Shown one piece after another: positions 1,619 to 64,000 of a DNA stretch of 64,000 bases (position 1 is the stretch's first letter; each line of letters opens with the position of its first letter). The position numbers and the translations under genes are program-made. This DNA is from Salpingoeca rosetta (taxonomy: Eukaryota; Protista; Choanoflagellata), in the NCBI GenBank assembly GCA_033442325.1, contig JAWQFM010000024.1:757716-821715 (forward strand). The letters run 5' to 3'. Below the pieces are notes generated by a model. The model saw only the letters and a program-made list of their open reading frames with translations. It searched no databases and was not told where the DNA came from.

Positions 1619-2663
1619 CTGTTCGCACGTGTGTGTTGTGTCAGTGTGTTTTGGTGTTTAAGTGTGCGTGTGTCAGTGTGTGTGTGGTGTGTAAGTGTGA
1701 CGACGACAAGATCCAGGCAGCCAACAGTGGCCACAAACAGCGTCCTTTTGACACACTCACACACAGACACACACACAGACACAGATATTTGTGCAACGCC
1801 ACGCCACACGGCTACTCGATGCTGATCAGCACGCCACAAAGCCAAAACACCACTGCTTGTTGTGCAGAGGGAGTAGCCCTCGCTGCCAACACGTGCTGTT
1901 TCACAAAGACCCCCATCCCACACACAGACACAGACACCCTCCTTCACACTTGCACACACACACACACAGAGCACACCAAACGTACTCTGACTGATGTGTC
2001 GCGCAGTCTCGACGATGGGAGGAGAGGGTAAGCAGCACAAGCAAGGGGAGAAGGGTGTTGTTGTGTCGTCTTCGGTTTTCCTCAGGGAATGAATGGAGGG
2101 AAACAACAGCAGCGCGTCGCGTCGCTTCTTCTGTGTGGGAAAGTTTGGCGCACAGAAGAACAAAGCCAAGCCAGTGAAGAAGTGCGCAACCAACTTTTTT
2201 TGCGAATGCAATCATGTAAAGAAGATTAGCGGGCTCTTTGATGAATTCGATGGTATTTTAAGAGGGGTTTGGTGGTGCACTTTGTGGTGTTGTTTAAGTA
2301 TTGATGACTTCGCCACTTTTCGCGACCCAATTTTCCGGACGAATCTGCTTGAAGCATTCGTCACGTCAGTCGTGGTCTGCTTGACAAAGGCAGGACTGTT
2401 AGCGCGCAGCAGCGAAAAGGGGGGGAAAGCAGCAGCGATGGAATGCAGCACTGGTCATGTCACCCGAACCAGACCAAGCAAGGCACGCATTGTTCCTTCC
2501 TGCCTGCCTGCCTCACTTCTCCTACCACCACCACGACAACAACAACGACGACAACAACGACCAGAAGCACTCACCACGAAACATCAATCAAGCAAACCAA
2601 CCAACCCACAAAGCAAGCCAGCAACAAGCAATCCAACCGCGCACACAGAGGAACAAGCAGACG

Positions 2664-5600: not shown

Positions 5601-8600
5601 TGTCTCCAGCCCGAGCTCCGATACGAAGTGCGCGTCGTTGGTGAGTTACTACATCGTGCATTCACTGGCACACACGTACAGTTGGTGTGTTTGTCTGTTT
5701 GTTTGCGTGTTTGTTTGTGTGTTTGTTTGTTTGTTTGCGTGTTTGTTTGTGTGTTTGTCTGTTTGTTTGCGTGTTTGTTTGCGTGTTTGTTTGCGTGTTT
5801 GTTTGTTTGTTTGTTTGTTTTGTGAAAATGTCAACAGCAGCATCTTTGCTTCTCCCACTCCCTCTGTAGTATCTGCAGCAGCACTAATATCATGGCTATC
5901 ATGTCTAACTCACCGTGGCAATCATTGTTGTCTTTCCACCCTGTTGCTTTCTTCATCTGTTGACAGGTCAAATTGGAACGCGTCGCGTCGAGAGCAATGG
6001 CATCATGACGCAAGCAGATGACCTCAACCTGTACGTACGCAATGCAACAGGTGCGCACAAGCGGGGGCGTGGCCCGGGCAGCGTCTCCTCTTCATCCGCC
6101 CGCGTCACGTGGCAGCGCCCGCAGCAGTCGTCGCGCTACACCGCAGATGTCCTCGGCTACCAGCTCCAAATCAGGTGCGTGCGTGTGCGTGTGTGCGTGT
6201 GTGCGTGTGTGCGTGTGTGCGTGTGTGTACATGTGTGTGCGTGTGTGTGTGTGTGTGCGTGCGTGTGTGTATGTGTGTATGTGTGGCGCATATGCCCGCA
6301 AGCGCCAACAACACAAAGCTTGTTTTTCCATGATATCACACCGCTGTCGTCGTCACAAACACATGTGCACACACATGTACAATCATCAGGCGATCTGGTG
6401 ACTTCAACGGGATCCTGGCAGATTCGAACCAGCTTGATACGTCGCGCTTCGAGAGCGAGCTGCTCACCCCAGATACGAAGCAGCGCGTGTATGTGCCAAA
6501 CAGCAGCAGCAGCAGCAGCGGGGGCGGCGGCGGCAACACAGACGAGGACGCCTCGTCATCCGCGTATGACCTCGAGGGCTGCTATTATGATTTTACAAGC
6601 AACACCACGCACTGCCTCAAGCCCTGGACAACGTACCAGGTGACGGTGCGCGCGCTCACGGCATTCCTTGGTCCGGGCGTCACCATTCACGTGACTACGC
6701 CCCGCGCCCGCCCAACAACGCCACCGCGCCTGCATACGGCCGACCACGCCGGCTCCCCGTCCTCTGTCACGCTGCAAGTGTCGCGTCCACAGCCGCTCAC
6801 CACCGTCATCACGGGGTTTCGTGTGGACTACACTAGCGAGCGCGGGGAGACGGGCGTGTACATGTACAACATAACTGAGCCCCTCACTAGCCAGCTGACC
6901 GTGCCAGACAGCCAGTTCAATATCCGCATCCCGGATCTCCTTCCCTACACCAAGTACGACTTCTCCCTCTCAGCCGTGAGTGCGGAGGGTTCAAGTCCGC
7001 TCTTGCTTGCAAGCACGCAGACCGATGAGGGCGTTCCCGGCAAGATGGCCCCGGTGTCCTTTGGCAACAAGCTGGAGAATGGCGAGTGGGAGGTGTCGTG
7101 GCAGCCGCTCGTGCCGGCACCTGGTGCCATCCTCCGGTACGACATCATCCAGGATGAGGACTTGCAAGGAAACGGCAGCGTGTCGCACTCGTTTGCTGGC
7201 AACGTCACTGCCGCCACAGTCAGCCTCCCTTCGCGCCTCATTCGCATCCGTGCCGTCACAGCGTACGTTCCTTCGTTTTGTGGCGTTTGTTGCATGTTGA
7301 TGAGAGGGAGGGTGTGAGAATTCGTGGGTGAGGAAGGATTGGGCGACGGATAGCGTGGGTGCAAAGCGGCGAAGAGGTGATGAATTTCGGTCAATCGGAG
7401 CAAGCTGGTGGAGTGTGTGTGTGTCTGTGTGCGTGTGTGTGTCTGTGTGCGTCTGTGTTTGTTCGTACACTGTCATCGATTCCCGCCTATATGCTTGCAT
7501 CCAAGGAGTGGTCACAAGTCACAACTAATCCATTGCTTGTCCATGTGCACTCATCTGTTCGTGCAATGTTTGATGTGACCACACAACCCCAATACTTGAC
7601 CAACTGACCCAACGCTCTCATTCCACCTTTCAATCTCAAAACAACCCTACAGGAAAGGCGAGGGTGAGTGGTCCGAGCTTCCTGCGCTTTCCTCTGGGTC
7701 CTCCAACTCCTTCCTCGACGTCCTGTTGTCGCCGGCGGTCGCGTCCGGCGCGGCTGGCGGGCTCTTGATGATCATCATCGTCATTGTGGTTGTTGTCGTC
7801 CGACGCCGCTCGCGCCGCCTGGAGAAGTTGGCCTCTGAAACGTTCAAGGCACCGCCCCCTGATGAGTGGGAGTATGATCCACAGCGGCTGTCGCTCGGCG
7901 CTGAGCTGGGCAAGGGCGCGTTTGGCGTCGTGTTTGAAGGCGTTGTCAACGGCATTCGCGAAATGAACGGCCTCGTCACGGTAAGCCATGACACGATCCA
8001 CAATCGACGCATTGGGGCATGCTGTATGCATTCGTGTGTTTGGTTTGGTTTGGTTTGGTTTGGTTGCTTTGGTTTGCTTTGGTTTGCTTTGGTTGCTTGC
8101 TTTGTTTTGCTTTGCTTGCTTTGCTTGTTTTTGTATGTTTGTTGTGTTGTGTTTATGCATGTGCCTGCGTATGTGTTGAGAGTAATGTAATGCTCGCTTC
8201 TTGTGGATCACACCCTCTTGTTGCTTTGCACGTCCTGCTAGCTCAGCGAACCCTCTTCCCGATTCATTGCATGCTCTCATTCCCCATCACATGCGCCATC
8301 ATATGCGCGCTCTTGTCCACGATTGCACCACAACAGGTCGCCGTGAAGCAGTGTTCGCCCGCAGAGGACGATGCCCTCACCATTGCAAACAAGAATGAGT
8401 TTTTGAAGGAAGCCACGCTCATGAAACAGTTCTCGGACCCGTTCCACCCAAATGTCGTGCGGCTCCTGGGTGTCATTACGCAATCTGAGCCACTCATGAT
8501 CATCACAGAGTTTATGGCCAACGGAGACATGCGCTCGTTCCTGCGCAAGAACCGGCCCCGTGACGGCAAGCCCGGCTCTCTCGCCATGTCCGACCTCGTT

Positions 8601-12072: not shown

Positions 12073-12577
12073 TCATTTGCGCTTGCCCACAATCTCGAGG
12101 ATGCGGATAAAGAGGTTGATCATGTCGAGANNNNNNNNNNNNNNNNNNNNNNNNNNNNNNNNNNNNNNNNNNNNNNNNNNNNNNNNNNNNNNNNNNNNNN
12201 NNNNNNNNNNNNNNNNNNNNNNNNNNNNNNGGAAACCAGCTATGCCCCTCTCGAGCAGTCTGAAGGCTCCCATTGTGGTGGAATTCGTTGCTTGCGCACG
12301 TCCTGCTAGCTCAGCGACACCCTCTTCCCGCTTCAATCGCATGCTCTCATTCCCCTTCACATGCGCCATCATATGCGCGCTCTTTCCACGATTGCACCAC
12401 ACCAGTTCGCCGTGAACCAGTGTTCTCCCCCAGAGGAGGATGCCCTCCCCTTGGCAAACAAGAATGAGTTTTTGAAGGAAGCCACGCTCATGAAACAGTT
12501 TTCGGACCCGTTCCACCCAAATGTCGTGCGGCTCCTGGGTGTCATTACGCAATCTGAGCCACTCATGATCTTCACAG

Positions 12578-42300: not shown

Positions 42301-45300
42301 GCTTCGTCTCAAAGTTGTTGGCGTTGCCCTGGCACCCGTAAAAGTCAAAAGCGACACAGGTGGCCGTGCTGCGGTCGTAGCGGTACCGCGTGACGGGGGC
42401 GCCCAGGTTGCAGTTGGTGCTGCCAGACGCGCGCGGCAGCAGGCACAGCGTGGGCTGCTGCTCCACCTGGTAGTCCTCAAAGAGCGGCAGGTAGCGGTCC
42501 GCGCGCACCAGCACGCTGGCGCTGGCCGGGTCGGGCGAGTACCCCGTCACGGCCGTGCCGCGCACAAACGTGCTCGCGCTCAGGTTGCTCTGCAGCAACG
42601 GATCGGGGTGGGACAGCAGCACAAACACGGCAGACGTCTCCGAGTCAATGTCGTTGCCGGGCTTGGCCTTGACCGTCACGTTGACGGTGAGCCGGCCCTG
42701 CGAGAACTGGTTCTGCACAGGCACCACCTCCACCTCCACAAAGCGCTGCAGGTTGAAGTTGATCAGCGCCATGTACTTGGCGTCCGCCAGGTTGATCTCG
42801 TCGTTCAGGTCCGCGTCCATGGCCGCCAGCTGCGCCGGAATGAGCTGCTGCTTCAGCTCCACGCCCTGCGGCTGGCGCTCAAAGTTGAACGAGCGCTCGG
42901 CCAGGTACAGCTGCGTGTACGAGACGTCGCGAATGTCAAACTCGCAGTCCCCGTTGGCGTCGCCGTTGAACCGGCTAAGGCAGTCTGCGCACGGCGGCGA
43001 GGCGCACGTCTCCACAGCGCGGCGCGCGCGCTCACGGCGCTCCTCCACGGCACGGGACGGCGCTGGCAGCGAGCGGCGCAGCACAGACAGCTGATCCGCC
43101 GTGTAAGGCACGGGCTCGCCAAACACGTCCCGCAACCGGGCGCCACTGTCATGATCAGCAACAGCAGCATCAGCAACGTCGCTGCTGCTGCTGCTGCGGC
43201 GGCNNNNNNNNNNNNNNNNNNNNNNNNNNNNNNNNNNNNNNNNNNNNNNNNNNNNNNNNNNNNNNNNNNNNNNNNNNNNNNNNNNNNNNNNNNNNNNNNN
43301 NNNNNNNNNNNNNNNNNNNNNNNNNNNNNNNNNNNNNNNNNNNNNNNNNNNNNNNNNNNNNNNNNNNNNNNNNNNNNNNNNNNNNNNNNNNNNNNNNNNN
43401 NNNNNNNNNNNNNNNNNNNNNNNNNNNNNNNNNNNNNNNNNNNNNNNNNNNNNNNNNNNNNNNNNNNNNNNNNNNNNNNNNNNNNNNNNNNNNNNNNNNN
43501 NNNNNNNNNNNNNNNNNNNNNNNNNNNNNNNNNNNNNNNNNNNNNNNNNNNNNNNNNNNNNNNNNNNNNNNNNNNNNNNNNNNNNNNNNNNNNNNNNNNN
43601 NNNNNNNNNNNNNNNNNNNNNNNNNNNNNNNNNNNNNNNNNNNNNNNNNNNNNNNNNNNNNNNNNNNNNNNNNNNNNNNNNNNNNNAACGTCGCTGCTGC
43701 TGCTGCTGCGGCGGCGGCGGCGGGTGGAGGAGACGGTGATGTGCACTTGAATCTGGCCCGCAACGGCGTCGCGTGGCGTGGCATCACCAATGGCAGTCCC
43801 CTGCAGGTCGTTGGTGGCAAAGGTGATGACAGAGCCAACAATCTGCGCCGGGTTGCGGGCGGGCGTTGCGGCGACACCGCGGAAGGTGATGCGAGCAAGC
43901 TCGACCGATGTGCCGGCGACCGTCTCCTCTGGGTCAACGGCGCCACCGACGCGAATCACGCCTGGCGGGTCTACCACGGCCTGGAAGATGCCCTTGGTCC
44001 AGCCAGCGCCCTCAGTGATCTTGGGGCCCGTGGTGGTGGTGGGCACCTCCAAAAAGGCGGTGCTGTAGCGAATCTCAAGGTCAATGGCGCCCAGGTTGAC
44101 GCCGCCCGTGTTGATGATCACGGGCACCTCAAACTCGTCGTCGCGCGCCTGAGCCGGCAGGGCGTAGCCGCCAGTGAAGCCCAGGTCAAAGTCGCCCACG
44201 TCCGGCTGCAGGTTGCAGATGATGGCCGTGGAGCCGGACACGAGGCTGTCGAGCACGCGGGCCACCACCTCCACCTGCGAGGCGCGTGTGCCCTGCAGCG
44301 TGGCCTGCGCCAGCGCGTTGACGGACAGCGGCGCGGTGGAGCCGTCCGAGATGACGGAAAAGGAGAGGGAGCCCGGCAGGAGCAGGGCGCCCGTCGTGGC
44401 GTCCACAAAGTCGTTGCGGATGGTGCCGTCGTCAAAGATGGCGCCCATGGCAATGGTGCTGCGCGCGCGGCTGGCAATGCCCTCAAACACATACGCACCG
44501 TCAACAACCGCCTTGCCCGGCAGCCGCAGGTCAATCAGCTGCTGCACGCGCACGGCGCGGTCCGTGACGGTGAGGAGCTGCGCCGGCGCATCAAACGAGC
44601 CAAAGCGCGCAGACACGTCCACTTGCAGGTCGCGCGAGGCGAGCGTGGCGTCCTGACCGCTGCGCACGGAAATCACCTTGGCACTGCTCACGCTGACAAT
44701 GCCCGTCTCCACCACGCCCGTGCCGGGCTTGAGGATGCGCGCGCTGCAGCCCGTTGTGACGTCCAGCGAGTCGCCGTTGGACAGGGTGAGGGCCACATTC
44801 ATGGCCGCCTGCTGGCGGACCGTGGCCGCGGCGTCGTTGGGGTTGAAGTAGCGGTTGAGCGATGAGACGGTCACGTTGTTGCTGTTGGCGTACGACGGGT
44901 ACGGGCGCAGCGCCACACGCACGCCCGTGGCGGCGACCACCTCCACGTCCACGCTCACGGTGATGTCCACGTGGATGAAGCGGATGGTGAGCACGCCTGC
45001 GCCGCCCGCGCCGCTGGTGGCGTTGGCCTGCGGTGCAATGGGGCGAATCACGGGCGAGAACGAGCCGTCCGCCGGCGGGCTGCACTCCAGCGACGCCTCG
45101 TCCGCGCAGATGGTGAACACGCCGTTGGCGCCGGAGAGGTCGTACACGGTGCGAGGGTCGGTGGCCATGTCAATGAGCTGCTCGTTACCGTTGCCAATGT
45201 CGTAGACCAGCGCCACGCCAATCTCGCTCTCCGTTGGCAGGCCCGCCGCTGCGGCGTCGTCGCTCTCGTACGTGAGCAAGGGGTCCACCCCCGTCACGCG

Positions 45301-48300
45301 CACGTCCGTGGGCGCGGGGATGGTCACGTCCACGAACGCGCTCGACTCAACAAGGTCAACCGAGTCTGTCTCCGGATCGGCGTTTGGTGACTCGCACAGC
45401 ACCGTCCACGTGGCGCTCAGCAAATTGCCAGAGCCGGAGCCCTGTGCCAGCACGTGCCTGTTGTCAAAGACGAGGTCGCCCGTGGACGGCACAGCAATCA
45501 CGCCGCGGTTCGCCTGGTCCACGGAGAGGCGAAGGCCAGTCTCCGGGCCAACGACCATGCGCGAGCCGTCCTGGAAGCGCGCAAACGCGGCCACGCTGCC
45601 CACCTCCTGCTCCTGGTCCAGCGCCTGCGAGATGGAGACGACCGAGGCCGACGCCAGGCCCGTGAAGGGGCTGTACAGCGGCTTGACCGTCATGTCCGTG
45701 AACACGATGAGCTCCAGCTCGTCCACCAGCAGGCTGGCAACGGTGCTGCCGCCGAGGCTCGGCACGGGCACGCTGCCCACGGCCTCCACTGTGGTGTTGC
45801 CAATGGTGCGCTCTGGCACAGCCGGGTTGATGACGGCAACGACTGCGCTTCCGAGGCGGAAGCCCCGCGCCACGTTGCCCTGCATCTGGATGGCGGTGGA
45901 CTGCGCCGCACCCGTGGCGTCGAGCGCCTGCAGCACGCCGCTCACGTCCTTGGTCACGCGCACGCGCACGGCGCCGGCGCCGCTCTCCATGCGGCTGAAC
46001 ATGGCAAAGGCGTGGATGCGGGTGTCCTGGAACTTGTCGCGGCACGTGGACGCGTCCTCGTCAAACCACTGCCACCCGGCCACGCGCGCCAGCATCGGGT
46101 TGTCCGCCTGCAGCTCAATCGGCAGCTGCGGCGCCCACACCTCACCAAGGCAGTCGCCGTTGGCGGTGGTGTTGCTCACGGCGTCGCGCACAGACACGGC
46201 GATGCTGGCGCCGGTCATGCCAGACGTCTCGTCGCCAGCGAGGACCACGCTTGAGCAGTCACTGCTCACGTCCCACACGTGCGGGTGGCGGGAGCTGCAG
46301 GACAGGCCTGGCGTTCCCGTGGTGCCGGTGACAAGCTGCATGTCGCCGGCAGCGTCGCTGGTCACGATGCGCAGCGGGAACGTCTGCTCCCCGCCGTTGA
46401 CGATGCAGGTCGTTTCGACAAATATGCAGCACTGGAGAATTCGCAGACAAATCAGGTATACCTGACTGATACATCGGTAAGTCGACTGGCCGCCTCATCG
46501 GAACCCCCAAGAGTGCTCCTTTTTCTACAAGCTGTTAAGACTCATAATCCTACTGTGTGTATCTGGATGTGATAATGGTCTTCCCGAGGTCAATTGTAAC
46601 TGATCCTCGTTCGGAGTCCCGCCGTGCCAGCAAGTTTTCACCATGTACGTATCGAGCGTACGAAGTGGGTTCGCGAACCGCCGTCCGACATATCGTAGTA
46701 ACGGACGCTTTCTAAAACCAACCTATATCCGGAATTCGCCTGATATGTATGACCTAGGCGACGCTACTGGAAGCAAGTATCACATAGTGTTGCGTTCTGG
46801 TTTCGAATCTCACACTCGTTCCTCATCGTGGGAGAGTACACAGCGGAGACTTATACAGAACTCCTTCGGACACTAACGGACATGGCCTAATTGGCGCGCA
46901 GCACCTTGCCCTTGAAGGCGGGGTGCGTGGGCAGCTCCACGAGGATGTTGCGGTTCAGCGTCCAGGGCTGCTCCTGCACAAGCGACACAGAGGGCAGCAG
47001 CGTGAGCGGGGCGCGCTCGTCCTCAAAGCCCGCCTGCACGGTCAGGGTGCGGCCGACACCGGCCACCGTGAACCATGCCGCGGGCACGGCGACGTTCACC
47101 GTGCACACGCCCAGGCGCGAAAACTGGTTGGTGCTGGAGCCCGCGGTGCAGGCCTGCTCCACGGCAACCGTGCTTGGGTCTGCGACGCCGAGGTCCGAGG
47201 CCAGGCCCGCGTCTGGAGTGATGCGCACCTTGACCGCCGTCAGCAGCGACGGCGGCGAGAAGTGCTCCGTGCGCACCTGCGCAGACACGCGCACGTACGC
47301 GTCGTCATGGTACACCTTGCTGGTGAGCAGCTCCACCCGCACCTGGTCAATGGCGCTCGGCACAGACGTGAACGCGCGCGAGACGGTGCCGGAGGCGAGG
47401 GCGGCCTCAAACGTGCCGCCCAGCCCCGTGTAGGTGGACGTGTAGTCGAGAATGTCAAACGTGTAGATGAGGTGGAACGTCACGTCCGCGTCCGTCGCCA
47501 GGCCGTTCAAGTCCATGGCCGTGACGCGGAACGTGACCGTCTCGCCCTGCTCGCGCACGATGACCGCGCTCACGGCAATCTCGCCCGTCTCCTCGTCAAT
47601 GTAGTACTCGCCGCCGCCGGCGTCTGGCGTCTTGAAGGAGTAGCGGACCACGGAGAAGTTGCCCGTGTCGCGGTCCGTGGCGTTGAGCTGCAGCACGACC
47701 GTGTCCTGCAGCGTGCCAATGCGCACGTTGGCCTCGTAGTGTGCCAGGTTGGACGTGTTGGCGGGGTAAAACGTGGCGTCGCCCTGCAGCGCCGGCCCAA
47801 ACATGGGGTGGTTGTCGTTGACATCCTCCACAATGACGGACACGGTGGCGGTGGTGGTGTGGAAGGGGAACGTCTGGTCCTGCGCCTGCACCGTCAGCAC
47901 AAACTGCGCCCGCGCCTCGCGGTCGAGCGGCAGCGTGTGCGTGATCTCGCCCGACACGGGGTCAATCTCAAACGTGACGGGGTCGTCGGTGCGGTCAACA
48001 ATGCTGTAGCGCACCTCCGCGGAGAGCCCAATGTCATCGTCCGTGGCCTGCACCGTGCCCACGGTCGACAGCGCCGGGGAGCTCTCCAGAAGCGAGAACG
48101 TGTACGTGGACAGGGTGAACACGGGTGAGAACGAGTTGGTGCACTCGCTCGTGGCAACGTCGTTGTCCAGGGTGGTGAGTGGGCTGTAGCCCGGCACGTT
48201 AACCTCCAGCGTCTGGCTGTCCCGCACGGGAAGGTTGAAGTTGATGGTGTCCGGGTACAGGAGCGGGGTCACAGACTCGGGCGGCCCGACGATAAACTCG

Positions 48301-49072
48301 ATGCGCGTGGGGTCTGTGCGCAGGTTGGAGTTGAGGGTGACCACCACCACTGAGACACCAATGGAGCCCACGTTGTCCGTGGTCATGTCTGTCTGGATGG
48401 CGGCCGCATACACACCGGCAGACGGGTTGACGCGCTCCGCGCGGATGAGCCCGCCAAACACGCCGTTCGACTGGCCCGTGTGGTCGATGCCAGCCACCTT
48501 GGTGCCCAGGCACTGCGGGCAGTCGTCCACCGACGAGGCAAACAGGCTGGTCATGGCGGACTGCTTGGAGGCGAGGTCAAAGAAGACGTACGTCTGCTGC
48601 TGGGCGTCGGGCGCGGTGTCACCCACGTCACCCTTCTGCAGCACCGTAGCCTCCAGGTACACGACACACCCGGCATCGCTCGTTACGTTGATGGGCTTGA
48701 CGGTGAGGTCGTTGAGGAAGCGCGACAGCTGCACGGAGGCCTTGGCCAAGTAGAAGGCATCGATGCTGTCAATGAGGCCGTTGCGGTCCGCATCCATGTT
48801 GTTCAGCTGCCGCAACGAGGGCGGCGAGGCAAGGAAGGCCGGGCCATACGTACCCGTGAACCCAACCAGGTCCTCCACAACGTACTGCAGCGTGTACGCC
48901 ACATCAACAATGTCAAACACGCAGTCGCCGTTGGCGTCGCCCGTCTCTGCGTCGCTGCCGCACGTGTCTGCACGGCGGCCACGCGACAGCACGCGCTGGC
49001 TCTTCTGCTGCTTGCCTGCCGACGTGTAGCGGACAAACGAGGGTGGCACGTTCACTGTTGCAACAACGTCTT

Positions 49073-49105
<33 letters not shown>

Positions 49106-52100
49106 GACGGCGGCGCCGGGCCGCGCTCAGCTGCACGTTGACCAGGCCAGCCACAAAGTCGCGGTCGGGCGTGCCAATCGGCGTTTGCCCAGACACAATG
49201 TCCGCCTCCACAAGCTGCTCCACAACGCCGCGAATCTGGGTGAGCCCGGTGCCGATGACGTTGAACTTGATGGTGGCGACGTGGTAGGCAGCGCCCTGTT
49301 GCGTGGCGTCGCTTGGGGAGCCGGACACGACGTACTCGCCTGGCGGGTCGTTGGTCTGCGCCACGAGCGGGCCGCCGCCCCAGTTGGCGCCCTCCGTCAG
49401 GCCGTTGTCCACGGCCTCCAGCTTGGCGTCGTCGTAGAACATGCGCAGCGTGAAGGCACCAAACGGCGTGTTGGCCACGTTCATGGCCACGCGCACGGTG
49501 ATGGTGTCGCCCACACTGGCGGGCTTGACGGGGATGCCGCTGCTGTCGCCCAGGTCAATGTCGGCAAAGGCCGGCTGCAAGTTGCACGCGAAGGACCTCG
49601 TCGCAGTGACGGAGGTGCCAACTGCGCTCGCCGTCAGCACCACGTTCTCGTGGTAGTTTCCGCGCAGGGTGACGGTGCCGCGCGCAGCGTCCACGGTTGC
49701 GGGCTGCGTCGTGCTGAGGGAGAAGGAGATGAGGCCCGGCAGCGTCGGGTCGCCGTTGTTGGCAAACAGCGTCAAGTACTCCGTGCCGTCGCTCAGCACG
49801 CACGCAAGCTTGGCCTGCGACGTCTGCTGGTCAATCACGCCCGTGAGCGTGGAGACGAAGGAGAAGCTCTTCAGCTGCGTCACCTGCACGGGGTTCTGGT
49901 CGTCCACGGTGATCTGCAGCGAGGACGCCTCCACGCCGGCAAACGCACCAATCAGGTCCACCGTGCCTTCGTTCAGGGCCTCCATCAGCTTGATGGTGCC
50001 AGAGTCGCCAATGGCCACCACGTTGTTGTTGGGCGTGGTCGTGCCCGCGCTGTACGTGACGTAGCTCGTCTCCGGGTGGGTGTTCACAGACAGGGTCGTG
50101 CCGTCGGAGATGCTCAGGGTCATGGCAAGCACGGCGCTCTGGCGCACGGACGTTGGGCCGATGCGGCTCAGCGTCGTCTCAGACACGGAGGCTGACCCAG
50201 AGTACGTGGGGTAGGGCGAGGAGAACACGCTCACGCCAGCCAGCTTGACAACCTTGACGTTGACGCCGTTGCCCGGGAGGCTGCGCAGGAGCGTTTCGTT
50301 GAGGTTGGTGAAGGTGACAAAGAGGCGGCCCGTGCCCACGTCCCCGTTGGAGTTGGGCACGATGCGCTGGGCATCGCCGTTGCGCTCCACGGTGAACAGG
50401 CCGTTGCTGTCCTCCAAGCGGTACTCGATGCGGTCGTCGAGGGTCATCTCCTTCTTGCGGTTGCCATCGTACAGCAGGAACACGCGCACGGTGCTGAACG
50501 TCTTGATGGAGCTCTCGCGGGCCAGCGGGTCCGCCGACGACACGATCCGGCTCTCCGAGGACGTGATCTCCACGCCAATCGGGTCAGCCAGCGTGACCTC
50601 GAGGTCCACGTTGCGCGTGGCGATGGTCTGTCCGCACGCCTGCCACGCCGCCGTCACGCGCACGCTGTCAGAGTCCGTGCCGGCCACCACCTGGTCCGGC
50701 ATGATGGACGCCACCGCAGCGTTGGAGGACGTGAGCATGAGCCCGTTGGCCGAGGACACGGCAACACGCGTGCCGTCGTCCATGACGGCGGACGCAATCA
50801 CGTGGCCGATGCGGCCCTCCACGTCAAGCTTGAGCGAGTACTGCGCAAGCGCGGCGGGGGAGCTGGACCGGGCGTACGTGGTCGTGGACTGTGGCTCCTC
50901 AAGCGTGAGCTCAGAGGCCACCACGACGTTCAGGTCAATCACGCCCACGGGGTCCGTGGTCACGTCGACGGCGGTCGTGCCCACGGTGCGGCCATCGCTC
51001 GTCACAACAGACACCTGCGCGCTGCCCACGCTCTGGCCCGTGATGGTGGGCGGGGACGCCGTCTTGCTCAGCGCCACGTTACCGTTGCTCACGGCCAGGC
51101 GCGACTTGACGGTCTCCGTCACATCCACCGTCACCACGGCCGAGCCAGAGCCCAGGGAGAAGTCCGCGTGGGCAGCAATGTCCGCCGACTGGAAGATGGC
51201 GGCGCAGGCGTTGGCCTCGTCGCGGTACTCGGAGAACTGGCCCAGGCTGGCATCGCTCGTGGTGAGGGCAAGCGGCGTGGCCGGGTGCCACACCTTGAAG
51301 GGCACGCGCGTGGAGGCGCTGCCAATGGTGACAACCACGTCCGCGCTGGTGGCCCCGCTCGTCTCCGTGCCGTCCAGGCGCATGGAGCAGCCCGAGGTCT
51401 GCAGCACAGCCGCGTTGGCGCTGCTGCAGCTGGCGCTCGCAGACGAGCACGAGTCGCTGCAGGCCGCGGTGGCCGACGAGCGCGGGCAGGCGTAGCACGC
51501 GAGCGTGGTGATGCCAACCGTCTGCGCGCTGCCCGTGAGCCGCGCCGTGTTGACCACCTGGCTCTGAGCTGCGTAGGCAATCACGCCGCGCACGCCGTTG
51601 GCGGCAATGTACACCTGGCCGGTGCGGCCCGTGCCCGAGCGGGAGATGAAGGTGCCGGCAACAGAGCCCGTCTGGCCGCGCACCTTGACACGCGACACGC
51701 GCGTGCTGCCAAGGCCCTCCACCACCATGCTCATGGAGGCAAAGGCGTCCGTGGTAGCGCCAGACTGCACAATGTAGTCGATGGTAATGAGCTGCTGGCG
51801 ACCCACCTCGCCCTGCTGAATCTTGTCCGGCACGGCGTTGGCGGCAATGACCGTGGTCGAGCCAGACTCGGTGACAATGGAGTTCCACAGCGACGAGTCA
51901 ATGTTGATGCGCTCCAGGGCAATGTTGCTGTCTGTGGTGAAGGAGAGCGTGAACGTCGTCACGTAGTATGTCACGTCCGTGGACACGGTGGCGCGGAAGC
52001 GCTGGCCAGGGTACACGGGCCGGCCAGGCAGCTCCTGCACAACGTCGTCCACGTACAGCGAATCCGACACGCTGATGCGCGGGCGCAGCAGCACCGATGC

Positions 52101-55100
52101 CAGGTCAGTCATGGTGCTGCCGGCGATGCCATAGCGCACGGTGACGCGGTGGTCCTCGCCCGGAACGAAGTACGCCGCGGGCAGGTCCGCGGTCGTCAGC
52201 GAGCACACGCCCGTGTTGACGTTGGTGGTGCACTGCTTGGAGATGCTCGAGCTCTGGATGTCAAGCAGCGCCTGGTCCGGCACCAGCTCCACGCGCACGG
52301 TGGTGGCGGAGAGGCGGGAGGAGAAGTCCTCATCCCGCACTTGCAAGGCCACGCGGACGGATGCGTCGTCGTACCACACCTCGTCGTCATCGTTCAGCAG
52401 CACCGCCCGCACCGTCGTCGCGTCCTTGCGCGCGTCGCGGAAGTTGCCAGAGGCGCTCAGGGCACCAAACTGCGTGGTGACGGTGCCTGTGCTCAGCACG
52501 TTGGCGTCCACCAGGAGGCCAAACTGCTGCTGCACGTCGCCATTGGCGTTGCGCGCCGTGTTGCCGATGAGGAAGCCGCGCCCAGAGATGGAGAAGGTGG
52601 GCAGCAGCTCGTCCACCACCAGCACACGCAGCGTCATGGTGCCCTGCCTGGCCTGCGGCCGGCCTTGGTCGTCCGCCTCAATGGTGAGGGTGAACGCGGT
52701 GGGCAGGTCCGAGGACACGTCGCGGCCCGTGCGCACCTCGCCACTCAGCCGATCGATGGTGAACGTGTTGCCGACGTTGCCGTCCAGGATGCTGTAGGCG
52801 ATGCCGCTCGTCTCACCGCACGCCGCATCGCCGTCCGTGGCCATGACCGTGGCCACCAGCACGCCGGCCTTTGCGCCAGAGGAGATGGACGTGCTCACCT
52901 GCGTCTGGTTGAACGCCGGTGCGGCCGTGTTCTCCTCCACCACGCGCACGTTGACAAAGCCCTGCGTCTGCATCACGGGGATGCCGCCGTCGCGGGCCAT
53001 GACGCTCAGCTGCACCGCGGCGTCCGTGAAGCCGCACAGCGAGCGGGTGAGCGTGAGCACGCCCGTTGCCGGGTCCAGGCTGACGTAGCCCGGGTGGCTG
53101 GTGGACACCAGCGAGAACCGCAGGAGCGCGTTAGGACCAGAGTCTGCGTCCGTGGCGTTGATCTGAAAGATCGGCGTTCCCACGGCCGCGGCGCGCCCAA
53201 GGGTGGCGACAAACGGCGACTGCCCAAACACGGGCGCGTTGTCGTTGGCGTCAAGCACGTTCACGGTGATGGTGCCGCTGCCCGTGCGAGCAGGGACACC
53301 GTGGTCGCGCATGCTCACGCCAAAGGAGTACGTGGTTTGCGACTCGTAGTCGACCTGGGTCTTCAGGTACAGGCCACCGTCCTTCCGCAGCTCAAAGGGG
53401 AAGTTCGCCAGGGCAACGGGGTCGGTCTCCGTGAGGAAGTAGCTGATCACGCTGGCATTACCCGCGTCAGCATCAACCGCCTGCAGCGTGGTGATGAGCG
53501 TGCCGTTGGCTGCGCTCTCACTCAAGGAGGTGGTGGCGGTGCCGCTGGGGAACGCGGGTGTGTTGTCGTTGACGTCGTCGATGCGAATCGTCACCTCCAC
53601 GGAGCCAACGTTGGGTGGCATGCCGTTGTCCGTGGCCTGCACCAGCAGCTGGTACGTGGCAAACGTCTCACGGTCAAGCGCGGACGCAACGGTGATGGCG
53701 CCCGTGCTGGCGTTGATGGCAAAGTCGCCGCGCGAGCCGAGCGCAATACTGTACATCACAGTCGTGGCAACCGTGTCCCGCTCCGTGGCCACCAGCTGCA
53801 GCGCCAGGTCGCCCACGCTCGCGTCCTCAGACACGTGCACCTCGTAGCTCGTCTGGTTGAACACGGGCGCGTTGTCGTTGACGTCGGCAACAAAGATGAT
53901 GGCGGTGATGTAAGTGGTGTGCACGGGCGTGCCGCTGTCGGAGGCAGACACGTTGAGCGAGAACTGGCTCCTCGTCTCAAAGTCCAGCGACTTTCGCAGC
54001 CACAGCGCGCCCGTGTCCGCGTCCAGCTCGAAGGTGTCGTCAACGTTGCCGGACACGATGGCGTACGTCACGCGCGAGGCCGGCGAGTTGTCCGCATCCG
54101 TTGCCGTGATGTTGAGGATGACGGTGTCGTTGAAGGCGTCGCCTTCCGGCAGGCGGCGGCTGTAGAAATCGGGCACGGAGAACACGGGCGAGTGGTCGTT
54201 GACATCCAGCACCTCCACAATCACCGTTGTTTCGTCCTGGAAGTCGATGTTGCCGGCATCGTGCACGCGAACCGTGACGTTGTACGTAATCTGGCCCATC
54301 TCGCGGTCGAGCGTGATCAGGGACACCAGGCGACCGTCGGGCTCCACCGTAAAGGAGCCAGGCACCTCCTCCGACAGGAGCGTGAACACGCTGATGTTGT
54401 TCGGGTAACTGTCCAGGTCTGTGGCGGGGAGCAAAATGGTGGTGTTGCCACCGTCCACTTGCTCGGGCACGCGGAAACGAAGCGGGTGTGACGGGAAGCG
54501 CGGTGGCTCGTCGTTGACGTCCGTCACCCGCACCGTGACGGCCGTGGTGTCGTTGAAGGAGGCCACAACCGGGTCGCGGGCCAGGACCACGACGTGGTAC
54601 GTGGTACGCTGCTCGCGGTCGAGCACGGGCGCGTTGCCAGACGCGTTGGCGTTGAAGGACAGCATGCCCGTCGCCGCGTCGATGGAGAAGAAGTTTTGCT
54701 CGTTGCCGGCGACAATCGAGTACACAATCTGCGCGTTGCTGCCCGTGTCCGCGTCCACCGCCTGCACCTGCACCAGGTCAACGTCGGCCACCTCATCCTC
54801 GGCGACGTGGGCAACAAAGGCCTGCTCAAACACGGGCGGGTTGTCGTTGACGTCGGTGACGGTGATGCGCACGCTGCCCGAGCGTGTGAGCGGCGGGGTG
54901 CCGCCATCGGAGGCCAGAATCTGCAGGTCGCGCGTGGTTGCTGCCTCGTAGTCAAGCATCTTGCTGAGCGTCAGCTCGCCCGTGGCGCGGTCCAGGGAGA
55001 AGGCGGCGTCGTCGTTGCCAGACACAATGCTGTAGCGCACCTGTCCGCCGGCGCCGAGATCCGGATCGCGCGCCAACACGGTGAGCAGCGACGAGCCCGC

Positions 55101-58100
55101 GGCCGTGGACTCAGGGATGGATGCGGTGAACTGCGTCTTGGAGAAGGTGGGCACGTTGTCGTTTATGTCCAGAATGTCAATGAGGATGTTGATCGTGTCC
55201 GTGAGCGGGTTCTCCACAACGTCGTCCGTCACCCTGACGCTGAGCACGTACAGGGCGGCCGTCTCGCGGTCCACCGACCCGTTGATGCTGATCACGCCCG
55301 TGCTGGGGTCAATGGCAAACGCGTCCGCCACGTTGCCGCTGACGATGCTGTAGGTGAGGGCGGCCGTGTCCCCGCAATCCGCGTCAGTGGCAGCGACCGT
55401 GGTCACCACATGGCCGTCTGCCGCGCCTTCGGACACGTTGAGCTGCAGCGTGGCCACGGGGAACTGCGGCGCGTGGTTGTTGACGTTGAGCACGGTCAGG
55501 GTCACGGTCACCGAGGTGGACTGGCCACCGGTGCCAAACGCGCCCTCAGAGGCCACCACCGTCAGCGTGTACACAGACTGGTCGGCGGCACACAGCGCCT
55601 GCGTGCTGGTGATGGCGCCCGTGACGGTGTCGATGGCCCAGCGGCCCAGCGCGTTGCCCGTGGTGATGGTGTAGCGGACGGGGCGCGCTTGCGTGCGATC
55701 GCCGTCCACGGCCTCCACCGTCAGCACGGTCGTGCCCGCGGCAATGGTCTCCTGCACGTCTGCGCTGTACGAGGCCTGGGAGAACACGGGCGGGGAGTCG
55801 TTGGCGTCGGCGATCACTACCACGAGCGGCGCCGTGCTCACGCGGCGCACGGGCGTCTGCTCGTCCGAGGCCTGGATGCGAAGCACAAAGCTGCTGCGCT
55901 CCTCGCGGTCCAGCGAGCGCAGCAGCCGCACCACACCGGTGCTGTTGTCGATGGTGAAGTGCGGGTCCGTGGCGTTGTCGCCGCTGATGATGGAAAAGGC
56001 GATGGCCTCCGTGTCGCCGCAGTCCTCGTCCGTGGCGCTCACCTGCGCCACAAACTCGCCGGGGCCGGCAAGCTCCGAGACGACAATCGGGTAGGAATCC
56101 ACGCTCAGCACGGGGTCGTGCAGATTCTCGTTGGACACGTTGATGGTCACCGTGGCCGTGGCCGTGTCGACAGAGTCTGTCGCCTGCACCGTGAGCACAT
56201 GCTGGGGGTTCCGCTGCGCGCACAGCGGCGCCTGGTTCACCAGCTCGCCGCTCACGGGGTCCAGGCGGAACGTGTCGTCGACGTTGCCGGCGATGATGCT
56301 GTAGCTCACGGTATCGGTGCCCTCGGGGTCGGTCGCCGTCAGGCGCACGATGGGCGAGTCAATGACATTGGCCTCCCCCAGCGTCACCATGTACGAGCTC
56401 GGGTTGAACACGGGCGGCTCGTCGGGAACGTTGCCCACCTTGATCACCAGCGTCAGGCGGCCCACGCGAGAGGGCACGCCGTCGTCGCGCGCGTCAATGG
56501 CCACCGTGTACTGCGTGCGCGTCTCGTAGTCCAGGGCGCGCAGCAGCGTGACAATGCCCGTGCTCGCGTCAATGCCAAACTCCTGGTTGGCAGACAGGTC
56601 AGAGTCGAGCGTGTTGATCGAGTACCGCAGGCCAAGCGCGTCGCCGCAGTCGGCGTCCGTCGCCGTCGCCTGCAGCACAAACGTGCCCATGGCCGTGTTC
56701 TCGGGCACTGTCACGGTGAGCGTGGCGGGCGAGAACGTTGGCGCGTTGTCGTTGACGTTGGAGATGGTCACGTCCAGGACAGCGTAGCCAACCAGGCCAT
56801 CAAAGCGCGAGTCGCGAATCTCCAGCACCAGCGAGTACGCCGGCGCCGTGCGCGCGCACTGCGCCACCAGCAGCGTCACCGCGCCCGTGCTCGCGCCCAG
56901 GTCAAACACGTTGGCGTCGTTGCCAGAGGCAATCGTGTACGTGTACGTGGTCCCGGCGGTCGCCGATGCCACCGTCGTGAGCACGCTGCCTGTGGCGGTT
57001 GTCTCCGGCACGCTCACCGTGTATTTGTTCTGGGAGAACTGGGGCGTGTTTGGCGCGGGCGCCTGCTTGGTGATCTGCACCTCAACGAGCGTGGAGCGGC
57101 CGCCGGCGTCCGTGGCCACGGCGTCCAGCACGTACGGCGTGTCCTGCGTCAGCGGTGCGACCACGGTGATCACGCCCGTCGTTGGGTGGATGGTGAAGGC
57201 AAACTGCGTGTTGCGGTTCAGCGTGTACGTGATGCTGTCGTCGCAGTCGGCGTCCGTGGCCCTGACGCGGCCGGCGTACGCGTTGAGGGAGCTGTCTGCG
57301 GTGAAGCTGTAGCTGGCCTGCTCAAACACCGGCGACGCCGCATTGGACGCGGAGAAGCTCAGCTGGACAACCGTGCCCGCGCTGCGTGCCTCCGGCTGGC
57401 CGTCGTCCGTCGCCGTCACCACCAGTGTGTACGAGCTCTGCGTGCGCGAGCACACGGGAGCGGCCAGCGTCAGGCTGCCCGTCACAGCGTCAATGGCAAA
57501 CACGTTGCCCGTGTTGCCGGAGGTGATGGCATAGGCAATGTTGTCGCCGTCCGCGTCGGTCGCCCCGACCAGCACGAGCTCCGTGCCAGTCGACACAGAG
57601 TCGGCAAACGTGCCGCTGTACGTGGCAGCAAACACGGGCGCGTACTGGTTCACGTTGAGGACGGTGACGAGCACGGTGGCGGTGGAGGTGCGCGGGGACG
57701 AGGCAAAGTCATCCGTGGCGGCTACGGTGAGCGTGTGTTGCGCAGCGCCACCGCTGCTCACGTCTGCGTTGAGCGGCTGCACAACAGCGAGCTCGCCCGT
57801 CTCGCGGTTGATGGCAAACAGGCCGTTGCTGTTGCCGCCGGTGATGCGGTATGTGACCGCGTCCCGGCAGTCGGCGTCGGTTGCCTGCAGCTGCAGCAGC
57901 ACGCTGCCCACGCTGCCCGTCTCCGAGACGTTGACGCTGTACTGGGCCTGGGAGAAGGCGGGCGCGGCCGTGTTGGCCGGCACCACGCTCACGTCCACCA
58001 GCGTGTACGACTGCAGGTCGGGCCGCGTCTTCGACTGCGCCTGCACCTGCAAGCTGTACGCGTCCTCCGACGCAGCGCACACGCGCGACATGAGCGTGAT

Positions 58101-61100
58101 GGCGCCGCTGTTGGCGTCCACGGCAAACTTGCCGGCCGAGTTGCCGCCCGTGATGCTGAAGGAGGCAATGCCGGTGCGGTTGGTGGCGACCGTCGCCACC
58201 GTCGTGCCGATGCTGGCCGACTCGGCCAGGTCCGCCGTGTAGCGCGAGCTGGTGAACAGCGGGAAGTCGGGCGACGTCTCCACCACGTTGATGAGCACAT
58301 ACATGGTGTCGGAGAGATCGCCATCAGAGGCAGACAGCTGCAGCGAGAAGGAGGAGCGCTCGGCAAAGTCCAGCTCGCGCACGAGCGTGATCACGCCGCC
58401 AACCGTGTCGAGGTCAAACGTGGGCGGCGTCGTGTCCCCGCTCACCACGCGGTAGCGGATCTCCGCCTCGTCTGCGCAGTCCTGGTCCGTTGCCTCCACG
58501 CGCGTGACGTAGTCGCCCAGGGAGGCTGTCTCCAGCAGCGTCACCCGCACCAGGTCCTGCGTGAACACGGGAGCAAACGCGTTGCCCGCCGTCACGGTGA
58601 TGGTGAACTGCGTGTCGGTCGACTGCGGCGGCGTCCCCGTGTCCGTGGCGCGCACAATGAGGTTGTACGTGCTCTTGTCGGCTGCGCAGAGCGGCCCAAG
58701 CGCGCGCACAATCACTCCAGTGGTGGGATCGACGCGGAAGGCGGAGCCCGCATCGCCACCGACAATGTTGAAGAGCACCAGGTCGCCGTCGCCGTCCGTC
58801 GCCTTGACCGTGCCAATCGCTGAGCCCGCAGACGCGGTGTCCGTCACGCTGGCAGACATCTGCGTGTGCGTGAACACGGGCTTGTGGTCGTTCACGTTGC
58901 CGACGGCGATGGTGATGGTGGTGGTGGCCGTGTTGGGCACGGGCGTGGCGCTGTCCGAAGCCTGCACGCGAAGCTCGTAGGTGTCCTGCACCTCGTAGTC
59001 GAGCGGCTCAACCAGCGTCACGATGCCCGTAGTAGCGTTCACGGAAAACGCGCTCATGTGCACGCTGGTGTTGCCGTTGACGCTCAGCAGCGCGTACGAC
59101 ACGCTGTCAAAGCAGTCGCCGTCCGTGGCGTACGCCGTGGCCACCGCGGTCGGCGCCTGCACAGACTCGAGCACGCTCACGGTGGCATCCGGCACGCTGA
59201 AGACGGGCGCGTTGGCGTTGCCGGGCAGGATGGTGACGTTGGCCGTGGCCGTGGCCGTGCGGGTGCCGTCGCCCGCCTCAATCTGCAGCAGGTACGTCAC
59301 GCCGGGGCTGTTGCGGTCGGCCAGGCACAGGCGGTGGCGCGGGAAGACGTTGCCCGTCGTCACTTCAATGGCAAACGGGAAGGCGGCCGTGGCCAGGGAG
59401 ATGGGCCCGGTCGCAGACACAATGCGATGCACCACAGGCAGGGCAAGCGCGTCTGCATCCGTGGCCTGCACCCGTAGCACGGGGGCGCCAACCGCCACAC
59501 CGTCGTGTACCACGGCGCTGTACTCCGTGTTGGCAAACACGGGCGCCTCATCGTCGACGTCCGTCACGGTGATGGTGAGCAAGGACACGTCGGTCTTGCC
59601 ACCCGCATCCGCCACCTGCACGCCCATGACAAACTGGCGCGGCTGGCCGTTGGCCTGCTCGTAGTCGAGCGCCCGTGCCAGCGTGAGCACGCCGCTTGCG
59701 CTGTCCAGCACAAAGGTGGCCGGCGTCGTGTCGCCGGAGATGACGCTGTAGGTGAGGGCGTAGTCGTCCCCGCAGTCCGCGTCCGTGGCGGCCAGCGTGG
59801 TGATGACCGTGCCGGTGGCCGTGTTCTCGGGAACAGACACGCTCGCCGTGCTCACCGCAAACGATGGGGACGCGGCATTCGCGTTGGTGACCGTCACATC
59901 AAACACGGCCACGCCAGCAGCGCTTGCGGGAAAGGCCGTGTCTGCCACGCTGAGCACGAGGCGGCGCAACGGCTCTGTGTCGGCGCACAGGAGGCCGGCC
60001 TGGTTCACGCGAAGCTCGCCAGAGCTGGCGCCCAGCGAGAACGCGCCGTCATCGTTGCCGGCAGTGATGGAGAAGGTGTGCGTGGCAGAGACGGTGCCGG
60101 CAGAAACGAGGCCGACGAGGGTGCCCGCAGCCGCGTTCTCCGCCACGTTGGCCGTGTACATGGGCTGCGAGAACGCCGGCGCGTTGGGGTCCGCGGCGAC
60201 GACGCGCACGCGCACGTTGGCCTGATCCGTGTTGGATGCGCCATCCTGCGCCTGCACGGTCAGAATCTCCTCGTCGCCCTGCTGCAGGGAGCTGGAGGCC
60301 ACGACAATGAGACCCGCAGACGTCACCGACACGCGGGAGCTGGGACCGCCCACCTGCGAGTAGGTGAGTGTCGTGTCCTCGCAGTCCGCGTCCGTGGCGC
60401 TGAGCACCAGCACCACAGAGTTGAGGGCGGCGTCAGCAGCCACGTTGGCCTCATACAGTACAGTGGAGAACGCGGGCGCAAACGTGTTGCCCGCGGTGAG
60501 GGTGACGGTGAGCACGGCGTCCGTGTACAGGGACGTGGGTTCACCGTCATCGGTCGCGCGCACAACGAGGGTGTACGTGTCAAGCAGGCTCGCGCACAGG
60601 GGCGCGGCCACGGTGATGGCGCCCGTGCTCGCGTCAATGGCAAAGGCATTGTCTGCGTTGCCAGAGACGAAGCTGAAGGCAACGGCGTCGCCATCCGCGT
60701 CCGTGGCGCTGGCCGTGGTCACGGCCGTGCCTGTGGAGGCGTCTTCGGAGAGGGTGACGGAGGCCTGGCCCAGGGACAGCACGGGTGCGTTGTCGTTGGT
60801 GTTGTTGACGGTGATGGTGAGGGTGAGCTCGTCAAACTCGGGCGGGTGCGTGCTGTCGCCCTCGTCTGTGGCGCGCACGGTGAGCGTGTACGAGCTGGCG
60901 TCAGCGTAGTGGATGGCAGAGGCCACAAATACCTCGCCAGTGTTGGCGCCCACGCCAAACACGGCCACGCTTGGGTCGCCGGTGAGCAGGTGCCCCGTGC
61001 CCTCGAGCGTGTACGTGAGGCGGTCACCGCAGTCCACGTCCACGGCCTGCACGGTGGTCACGCGCGTGCCCACGGTGGCACCCTCCACCACGGAGGCCGT

Positions 61101-64000
61101 GGCGCTGGTGCTGGGGAACGCGGGCGCGTGCGCGTCGCCCAGGAGCACGTCGATGAGGACGGGCACGGAGGCCTTGCGCGCCGGGGAGCCGTTGTCGCTG
61201 GCCTCGACCAGCAGCGTGTACGACGACTGGTCGTTGAGGCACAGGTTGCGCTGGCGGCTAATCTCGCCCGTGGTGGTGTTGATGGCAAACACGCCAGCGT
61301 CGTCGCCGTCCACAATCGAGTACGTGATGTGGCACGTGTCGCACGCGTCGCTGTCTGTGGCCTCCACCTGCAGGAACGGCATGCCCTGCGCCAGGGTCTC
61401 CACCACGCTCACGCTGTACAGCGGGAGGCTGAATGCCGGGTCAAACTCGTTCACGTCGAGGATGGTCACCTTGACCACGACCGAGTCAAAGGCCGGGTCG
61501 GGCGTGGCGTCGTCCTGCACGCGCACGACAACGTCAAACGAGGTGTGCTCTTCGCGGTTGGTGGGGCCCGTGGTGAGCAGCTGGCCGTTGGAGTTGATGC
61601 GGAACCAGCGCGACGTGCCCGTGCCGCCCACGATGCTGTACAGCACAGAGTCGCCGCAGTCCGGGTCGACCGCGGAGATGGTGGTCACCAGCGTGTCGCT
61701 GGGCAGGCCCTCCTGCAGCGCGGCCGAGGGCAGCTCGTTGGCAATGACGGGGGGCCGGTTGTCGACAATGCGCACAATCACGTTGACCTGCGCAGAGGAG
61801 ATGCGGCCGCCGCCGTCCGTGGCGCGCACGGTGAGGTCGTAGGAGGAGCTGGCAGAGCCGCACAGGGCGCCCGTGTTGGAGATGGCGCCCGTGGTGCTGT
61901 TGATGGAGAAGAGGCCGTCAATCGTGTCCGCGAGCGTGTAGGTGACGGTGCCAAACGCGCCGGCATCCGGGTCCGTGGCCTTGGCGGTGTACACGGTGGT
62001 CGGGTACGACACCTCGTCAATGGCCTGCGTCACGGGCGACTGCGCAAAGGAGGGCGAGTTGTCGTTCTCATCATCAATGATGATGACAACCGTGGCCAGG
62101 CCAACAAAGGAGCCGGACGTCACGGTTGCGGTGACCTCAATCTGCGGCGTCGCCTCGCGGTCCACGTTCCCCGTCGACACAAGCACGCCCGTCGCCGTCT
62201 GCATCATAAAGGGCAGGTTGGACCCCTGCAGGCCGTACATGAGCGTCTGCCCCTGCTGCAGGCAGTCCACGTTGTGCGCGACGAGCGCGGGGCTCAGCTC
62301 CACGCCAGAGCCCTGGTTCTCGCGGAAGTGGAACACGTAGCTGTCCTTCTCAAACGCGGGCGGGGAGTCGGTCACGTCCTCCACCAGCACGGTGACCGTG
62401 GTCGTGGTCTCCATGGGCGGCGTGCCCGAGTCGCGCGCCGTGACGTACAGCAGAATCGACTCCACAAACCCGGTGCCGTTGACGTTGGGCTTGCACGTGG
62501 AGTTGCCGCGCAGCTGCTCAAAGTCCACGCGCTGCTTCAGCCACAGGCCGCCCGTGGCGGAGTCGAGCTCAAACACGCCGTTGGGGTCGCCCGAGGCGAT
62601 GCTGTAGTTGACCTGCGCGTTGGCGCCCTGGTCCGGGTCCAGGGCCACAATGGACAGGAACGTGCGCTCCACGGGCTTGCTCTCGGCGATGGTGACCGTG
62701 TAGTTGGTGCGGTCGAACATGGGCGCGTTGTCGTTCTCGTCCAGCACGTTCACGGTGACGGTGGCGTCGGCGTGGTTGGCGGGGTCCGACGCGCGAATCG
62801 TCAGCACGTACTGCGCGCGCAGCTCACGATCAAAGGACGTGTTCTGGTACACGGCGCCCGTGAGCTCGTCCACGTAGAAGAACTGCCGCATCTCCACGGG
62901 CAGGAGGGAGTAGCGGATCTGGGCGTTGAGGCCCGCGTCCGCATCCGAGGCGTTGGCGAGCAGCAGGAACTTGGGCCACGGCCCGTTCTCGCGCACGGCG
63001 ACGCTCGTCTGCGTGAAGCCAAAGGTGGGCAGGTTGTCGTTGATGTCGCGCAGGATGAGGGAGATGGTGACGTTTGGCCCCGTCTGTGGCGGGACACCGC
63101 TGTCATGCACGCCAATCACCAGCGTGCGGCCGTGCCCCATCGCCTCGCGGTCAAAGACGGCCTTTGTCACGATGGAGCCCGAGTCGCCCATCTCAAACAG
63201 GTCCTCCTCGTTGCCCGTGAGGATGGTGAAGGCCGGGCGCGCGTTGGCGCCGAGATCCACGTCTGTCACGGCCAGGCGGTACACCAGCGTGCCCACCGGC
63301 TGCTCCTCGTCAAAGTACACCGTGACGTTGGTCGTGTCTGGGATGGGCGGGTTGTCGTTGATGTCGGTGATGGTGATCTGCACGCGCGCCTCCGAGGAGA
63401 GCGGGGGCGTGCCCAGGTCCGTGGCGCGCACAACAAACTCAATCTCCGGCAGGCCGTTCGGGAGCAGGGCCTCCCGGTCCAGGTCGGCAGCCACCTTGAT
63501 GGCGCCCGTGTACTCCTCCACGGTGAACCGCGTCTCGTTGACAATGGCGTAGCGCATCTCGTACTCGGCAGAGGGCGGGCGGTCCGGGTCCGTGCTGGAC
63601 ACGTTGAGCACGGTGAAGCCGATGCTGCTGTGCTCGGGCATGGACCCTCGGAAGAGCGGCCGCGAAAACACGGGCGGCTCCACGTTGGCGTTGTCCACGA
63701 TGACGGTGACGGTTGCTGGCAGCACGGCGCGGCCGGGCGGGTCGCCGCCGTCCTGGGCGTTGATGTTCAGCGTCAGCACGCGGCGCTCGTCGTACGAGAC
63801 CACCTTGGACGTGCGCAGGAGCTGCCCCGTGGTGCGCCCCACGGTGAAGAAGCCCTCGTCCGTGGCGCCGGAGATGCTGTAGGTGACGTTGCCCAGCGCG
63901 CCAGAGTCCTGGTCTGTGGCAAACACGGACGCCACGAGCGTGCCTGCAGGCACGTTCTCCAGCATGTTGACGGTGATGTCCGTGTCGTTGAACACGGGCA
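39374..64000 (-). CDS. Giant coherin-type cadherin (EC repeats + TMEM132-like + cohesin + dockerin + Kunitz + TM + acidic tail); 5' end beyond the window; interrupted at 46411-46890 and by the N-gap 43204-43686
   Basis: Three ORF pieces (46887-63995, ~43687-46410, 39374-43174). Dozens of PE/LDRE/DxNDNxP/ATDxD cadherin motifs, two cohesin-like domains, two dockerin-like GDANGD..D pairs, a 6-Cys Kunitz (FYGCQGNANNF) and a TM helix ILIAGFTAAALLVFIVLLLLLL. Confidence 0.92.
42281..42445 (-). other. Kunitz/BPTI domain within the cadherin
   Basis: CLLPRASGSTNCNLGAPVTRYRYDRSTATCVAFDFYGCQGNANNFETKHECETTC: six Cys in Kunitz spacing, with the GCxGNxNNF signature. Confidence 0.9.
42770..44195 (-). other. 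Cohesin-like domain, polybasic/poly-Ser linker and dockerin-like domain (copy 2)
   Basis: ARDDEFEVPVIIN..LGAIDLEIRYSTAFLE..ELARITFR; TRRRRRSSSSS..RRERARR; GDANGDCEFDIRD and DADLNDEINLAD. Confidence 0.75.
43204..43686. other. Assembly gap (483 N), probably spurious
   Basis: The 29 nt left of the gap (43175-43203) are identical to the first 29 nt right of it (43687-43715). Confidence 0.85.
46411..46890. other. ~480-bp block of foreign composition interrupting the cadherin CDS
   Basis: Hand count gives ~49% GC, against visibly much GC-richer flanks. It is TA-rich, lacks the host codon periodicity and microsatellites, and introduces an in-frame TAG at 46887-46889. Boundaries are accurate to a few nt. 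Confidence 0.85.
48740..49563 (-). other. Cohesin-like domain, polybasic/poly-Ser linker and dockerin-like domain (copy 1)
   Basis: ASVGDTITVRVAMN..FGAFTLRMFYDDAKLE..VATIKFNV (cohesin-like); ARRRRRSSSSSSSSS..RGRR; GDANGDCVFDIVD and DADRNGLIDSID (paired F-hand motifs). Confidence 0.75.
52600..64000 (-). repeat. Array of roughly 35 extracellular cadherin (EC) repeats
   Basis: About 3800 aa with ~105-110 aa periodicity of DxNDN/NxxAP, ATDxD, Y.I..GN and TG.I motifs; the count is estimated from length. Confidence 0.9.

Follow-up and report, generated by a model that had tools for sequence, protein, structure and literature searches.

A stretch of DNA that breaks a long open reading frame can be compared with several known kinds of sequence. 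Spliceosomal introns interrupt open reading frames, have a GC content below that of the exons and offer a GT...AG pair that can be used in frame, and the block described here shares these features. Transposable elements and horizontal insertions appear as compositionally foreign islands with sharp borders inside a gene, and this likeness holds for the block as well. For the encoded protein, a standard of comparison is provided by four homologues (P0042, P0013, P0126 and P0121; 4,768-7,414 aa). Each of them contains two matching stretches, which suggests that the four share the duplicated layout of the host protein. Like the host, they have TMEM132-type domains after cadherin repeats, and the order and spacing agree with those of the host. 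Unlike the host copy, however, none of the four lacks a segment of about 157 aa, which in the host is overwritten by filler.

Here, we analyzed this locus within a 64,000-nucleotide stretch of Salpingoeca rosetta DNA, which we refer to as the window. A preliminary description of the window had proposed that a non-native block substitutes for part of the coding sequence of a giant cadherin. That proposal agrees with what we found, namely, 492 letters standing in place of 469 and the lack of the block in 20 of 20 sequencing runs.

Results

Organization of the host cadherin gene

The host cadherin is longer than 6,800 aa, and its gene is free of introns over at least 17 kb (window positions 42853-63995, minus strand). 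The native upstream part (46893-63995, minus strand; about 5,700 codons) runs off the end of the window. It encodes cadherin repeats on either side of a first TMEM132-like module, which includes cohesin- and dockerin-like parts. The native continuation of the frame (43687-46400, minus strand) starts inside a TMEM132 fourth Ig domain, which is followed by the fifth. A supermodule of cadherin repeats, TMEM132-type Ig domains and parts that are cohesin- and dockerin-like by eye occurs twice in the protein. The Pfam profiles Cadherin, Ig_TMEM132_4th and Ig_TMEM132_5th matched the host protein. The TMEM132-type families concerned were PF16070 and PF23486; PF23039 was matched only in P0042, with a score under its cut-off. 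Scores above the curated cut-offs were obtained for the fourth and fifth Ig domains both in the first module and in the downstream flank. In this flank, the Ig_TMEM132_4th match enters its profile at position 19, right at the edge of the block; therefore, the block cuts a domain.

In the window, the minus-strand open reading frame spans 5,702 codons between 63995 and a TAG at 46887-46889; a different frame takes over at about 46400 and runs to 42853. The preliminary description had reported a TAG right after KGKVLRAN and a restart of coding in a different frame past the block, and we recovered both.

A run of 483 N (43204-43686) also lies in the cadherin gene, just after a ten-residue linker that, in the first module, precedes the dockerin-like segment. 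Each of the three further N runs in the window (at 12131, 18990 and 38338) has a length of exactly 100, and the length of the 483-N run is near that of the filler block. The 483-N run may represent a gap in the assembly or a stretch that was withheld.

Sequencing reads across the site

Public reads were searched with sampled 31-mers of window positions 45900-47400. The 20 runs recovered come from seven studies (2014-2024) and all bear the label of one organism; every one of them contains 0.64 of the sampled 31-mers, and the share expected with the flanks present and the block absent is 0.645. Reads were examined over 45700-47600, across both junctions as the preliminary description had recommended, in three runs filed as DNA (X1, 2014; X3, 2018; X14, 2024) and in one run of raw RNA reads (X22). 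In all four runs, the depth was zero in each of the seven bins inside the block. One contig from each of the three DNA runs bridges 46400 to 46893, skipping the 492 letters and holding 469 other letters between these positions. Over the stretch examined, the bridging contigs show 0 differences from the window between 45700 (or 45969) and 46400 and over 46893-47600. In the RNA run, reads show that the flanks are transcribed; all first mates map to the plus strand, an orientation that in most stranded libraries points to transcripts of the minus strand, on which the gene lies.

The X14 contigs break with a 30-nt overlap at 45969-45998 and an 8-nt loose end (ATGGAGAG). This is probably a mere break in the assembly graph, because X1 and X3 are continuous there.

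Taken together, the non-native filler block occupies 46401-46892 (492 nt, with no strand assigned), a stretch of zero read depth and uniform, random-like composition. The borders of 46411-46890 given earlier located the block correctly but missed its exact edges, which the reads place at 46400/46401 and 46892/46893. Because the reads set these edges, the upstream 'N*' and the downstream 'TCIV' lie inside the block and do not belong to the gene.

The missing coding sequence

As the window stands, the offset between the flanking frames is 4034 nt (mod 3 = 2). Putting 469 letters in the place of the 492 reduces it to 4011 = 3 x 1337, and the flanking frames therefore join. Judging from this length, the frame and the homologues, the native locus would contain 157 codons between '...KGKVLRA' and 'NGGEQTF...', and the native 469 letters would form a stop-free coding sequence. 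In the paralogous first module, the counterpart of the upstream flank ends at residue 4002 and that of the downstream flank starts at about 4156, which predicts about 153 aa between them. The same anchors are separated by 159 residues in P0042, 154 in P0013, 161 in P0126 and 158 in P0121, and these homologous segments are similar to the paralogous one (E from 1e-23 to 1e-2). The paralogue and the four homologues thus bear out the earlier claim that coding sequence is missing exactly here, although its size is corrected from about 145 aa to a probable 157 codons.

In the second module, the 157 codons lost to the overwriting would encode a conserved domain that lies after the last region of cadherin repeats and ahead of the TMEM132-type fourth Ig domain. 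In P0042, the stretch ahead of the fourth Ig domain weakly matched the TMEM132 cohesin-like third domain (E 0.0037, below the cut-off), and our best guess is that the overwritten segment is this domain. A search for homologous proteins with region 5300-5702 of the giant open reading frame returned cadherins only, choanoflagellate ones among them, at no more than 38% identity. When the 500 aa that follow the block were used in an exhaustive search of representatives, the best identity was 35-40%. We also considered whether the block could be a degraded, low-quality version of the native domain and rejected this reading: when the paralogous and homologous segments were compared with the block by tblastn, no match rose above noise, the best one having E=0.12 and lying on the wrong strand.

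Composition of the block

The GC content switches sharply from 0.66-0.70 in the flanks to 0.49-0.52 in the block. The base counts in the block (A123 C124 G110 T123) fit a uniform model, as do its longer words (chi-square p=0.77 for mononucleotides, 0.66 for dinucleotides and 0.21 for trinucleotides). Among 480-nt windows, the trinucleotide chi-square of the block (57-72) is the lowest of the 64 kb, compared with a median of 316 and a best value elsewhere of 109. GC3 is 0.92 and 0.91 in the two coding flanks, whereas GC at all three codon positions within the block is 0.46-0.52, and codon periodicity is absent. The switch in composition that had been noticed by eye is thus confirmed by the GC drop, the GC3 contrast and the trinucleotide minimum; the comparison of k-mers and codon periodicity with the flanks, also suggested at that time, yielded a random-like block between GC3-biased flanks. 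The longest open frame in the block (90 aa) falls inside the range of random sequence, and the block contains neither the microsatellites nor the skew typical of the non-coding DNA of this genome. In its 1- to 3-mer counts, codon periodicity, folding and longest open reading frame, the block behaves as uniform random sequence.

A second random-like stretch, recognized by composition only, was found at about 2640-3010 of the contig that contains the window, with a trinucleotide chi-square of 60.7 against a median of 339 and a GC content of 0.48. It adjoins a long (GT)n tract and may likewise be filler.

Repeats, palindromes and folding

A repeat search found no target-site duplication, terminal inverted repeat, poly-A or repeat array in the block and only short, imperfect repeats at chance level, in keeping with the preliminary description. 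Both perfect palindromes named there occur in the block, one of 14 nt at 46452 and one of 12 nt at 46668; the 6-nt CGTCCG/CGGACG stem named with them is trivial. Under a uniform random model, the pair of a 14-nt and a 12-nt palindrome has p about 0.003 and any two palindromes of at least 12 nt have p about 0.007, both by tests that were picked post hoc. The pair is therefore somewhat above the uniform-random expectation and, to that extent, counts against reading the block as random filler. RNA folding of the block is no better than that of shuffled sequences (z-score 0.09), and no Rfam family matched it at E<=1. The block is a single copy in the 55.4-Mb genome (68 contigs), and blastn of the block against the rest of the 64-kb window returned nothing.

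Discussion

Overall, we are highly confident that the block is not part of the genome of this organism and that it represents artificial or erroneous filler overwriting 469 nt of native coding DNA. According to this explanation, the giant cadherin gene of the organism would be an uninterrupted open frame here, and filler with uniform-random statistics would have replaced the native letters in this copy of the genome. A synthetic sequence placed into the genome copy is the most likely origin; a less likely one is a mistake restricted to the assembly as deposited.

We weighed this explanation against readings in which the block is natural DNA. An oddly composed spliceosomal intron, with GT at 46904 and AG at 46432, was suggested by the existence of this frame-keeping pair, which the preliminary description had pointed out and which is indeed found on reading the sequence, and by the introns elsewhere in the window, whose GC content is below that of the exons. 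However, an intron would stand in the genomic DNA, where the contigs of X1, X3 and X14 carry 469 different letters, and the words of the block occur in none of the runs holding this stretch (n=20). Its absence from these genomic contigs rules out an intron. Spliced transcripts that remove the block, named at the outset as the sign of an ordinary intron, did not appear either: the raw RNA reads of X22 contain no spliced joint at the site, at a coverage beside the block that is low (0.5-1x). Moreover, splicing would take out a domain whose conservation extends to the paralogue and the four homologues, and the microsatellites and skew of this genome's non-coding DNA are lacking. We give the intron reading practically no credence. 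A genuine replacement or horizontal insertion that is private to the assembled culture, takes the place of a TMEM132-like domain and truncates the receptor to a secreted ectodomain also seems highly improbable. In its favor, the block sits in the stored genome sequence, and the source reads of the assembly itself may lie outside the runs that were searched. Against it, all 20 runs, spread over seven studies and ten years, lack the block and have flanks identical to the window; a uniform 1- to 3-mer composition is rare in natural DNA of either kind, coding or non-coding, only stretches overlapping the block approach it in the window, and the second random-like stretch on the contig is also under suspicion as filler; and the block is unmatched in plasmid, phage, E. 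coli and bacterial and archaeal collections. The truncated secreted ectodomain, which the preliminary description had kept as a fallback, is not supported, because the native locus appears to be a continuous open frame. A transposon or simple insertion was rejected as well, given the single genomic copy, the lack of terminal features and the substitution, rather than addition, of sequence.

The same collections bear on a contaminant or vector (a prey bacterium, a cloning vector or a phage) joined to the locus by the assembler, which would fit a GC content near 50% and the several 6-nt restriction-site palindromes in the block, which has EcoRI, NruI and AvrII sites. However, a 490-nt sequence should contain about seven six-base palindromes by chance alone. 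At blastn sensitivity, the block had no match in 72,556 plasmids, 50,697 phage records or 5,426 E. coli genomes, and an exact 26-mer from it was not found in the bacterial and archaeal genome collection. Codon periodicity is absent, and the longest frame of 90 aa corresponds to the random expectation. In addition, a chimeric join would not preserve a near-native length with both flanks intact. We therefore regard a contaminant or vector as very unlikely and retain non-native filler as the explanation of the block.

As filler, the block is without biological meaning and matters for data hygiene. A gene model, a domain count or a claim of a 'truncated secreted cadherin' would be wrong if it were based on the locus as it stands in this copy, since the native gene appears to be continuous here.

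Compared with known systems, the block differs from a spliceosomal intron in that it is absent from the DNA of the organism, is not removed in any spliced read and could be removed only with the loss of a conserved domain. Unlike a transposable element, it has no target-site duplication, terminal repeats, open reading frame or other genomic copies. Unlike an insertion into an intact target, it has 492 letters in place of 469, is accompanied by the loss of about 153-161 aa of the host protein and is absent from the reads. It departs from synthetic random filler in its two perfect palindromes, which are slightly above chance, and from a simple equal-length overwrite in the 23 nt by which its length differs from that of the native sequence. 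Nevertheless, the block shares with synthetic random filler or a wrong patch the lack of a homologue, structure and coding signal, the absence from all reads, the uniform 1- to 3-mers and the replacement of native sequence at nearly equal length.
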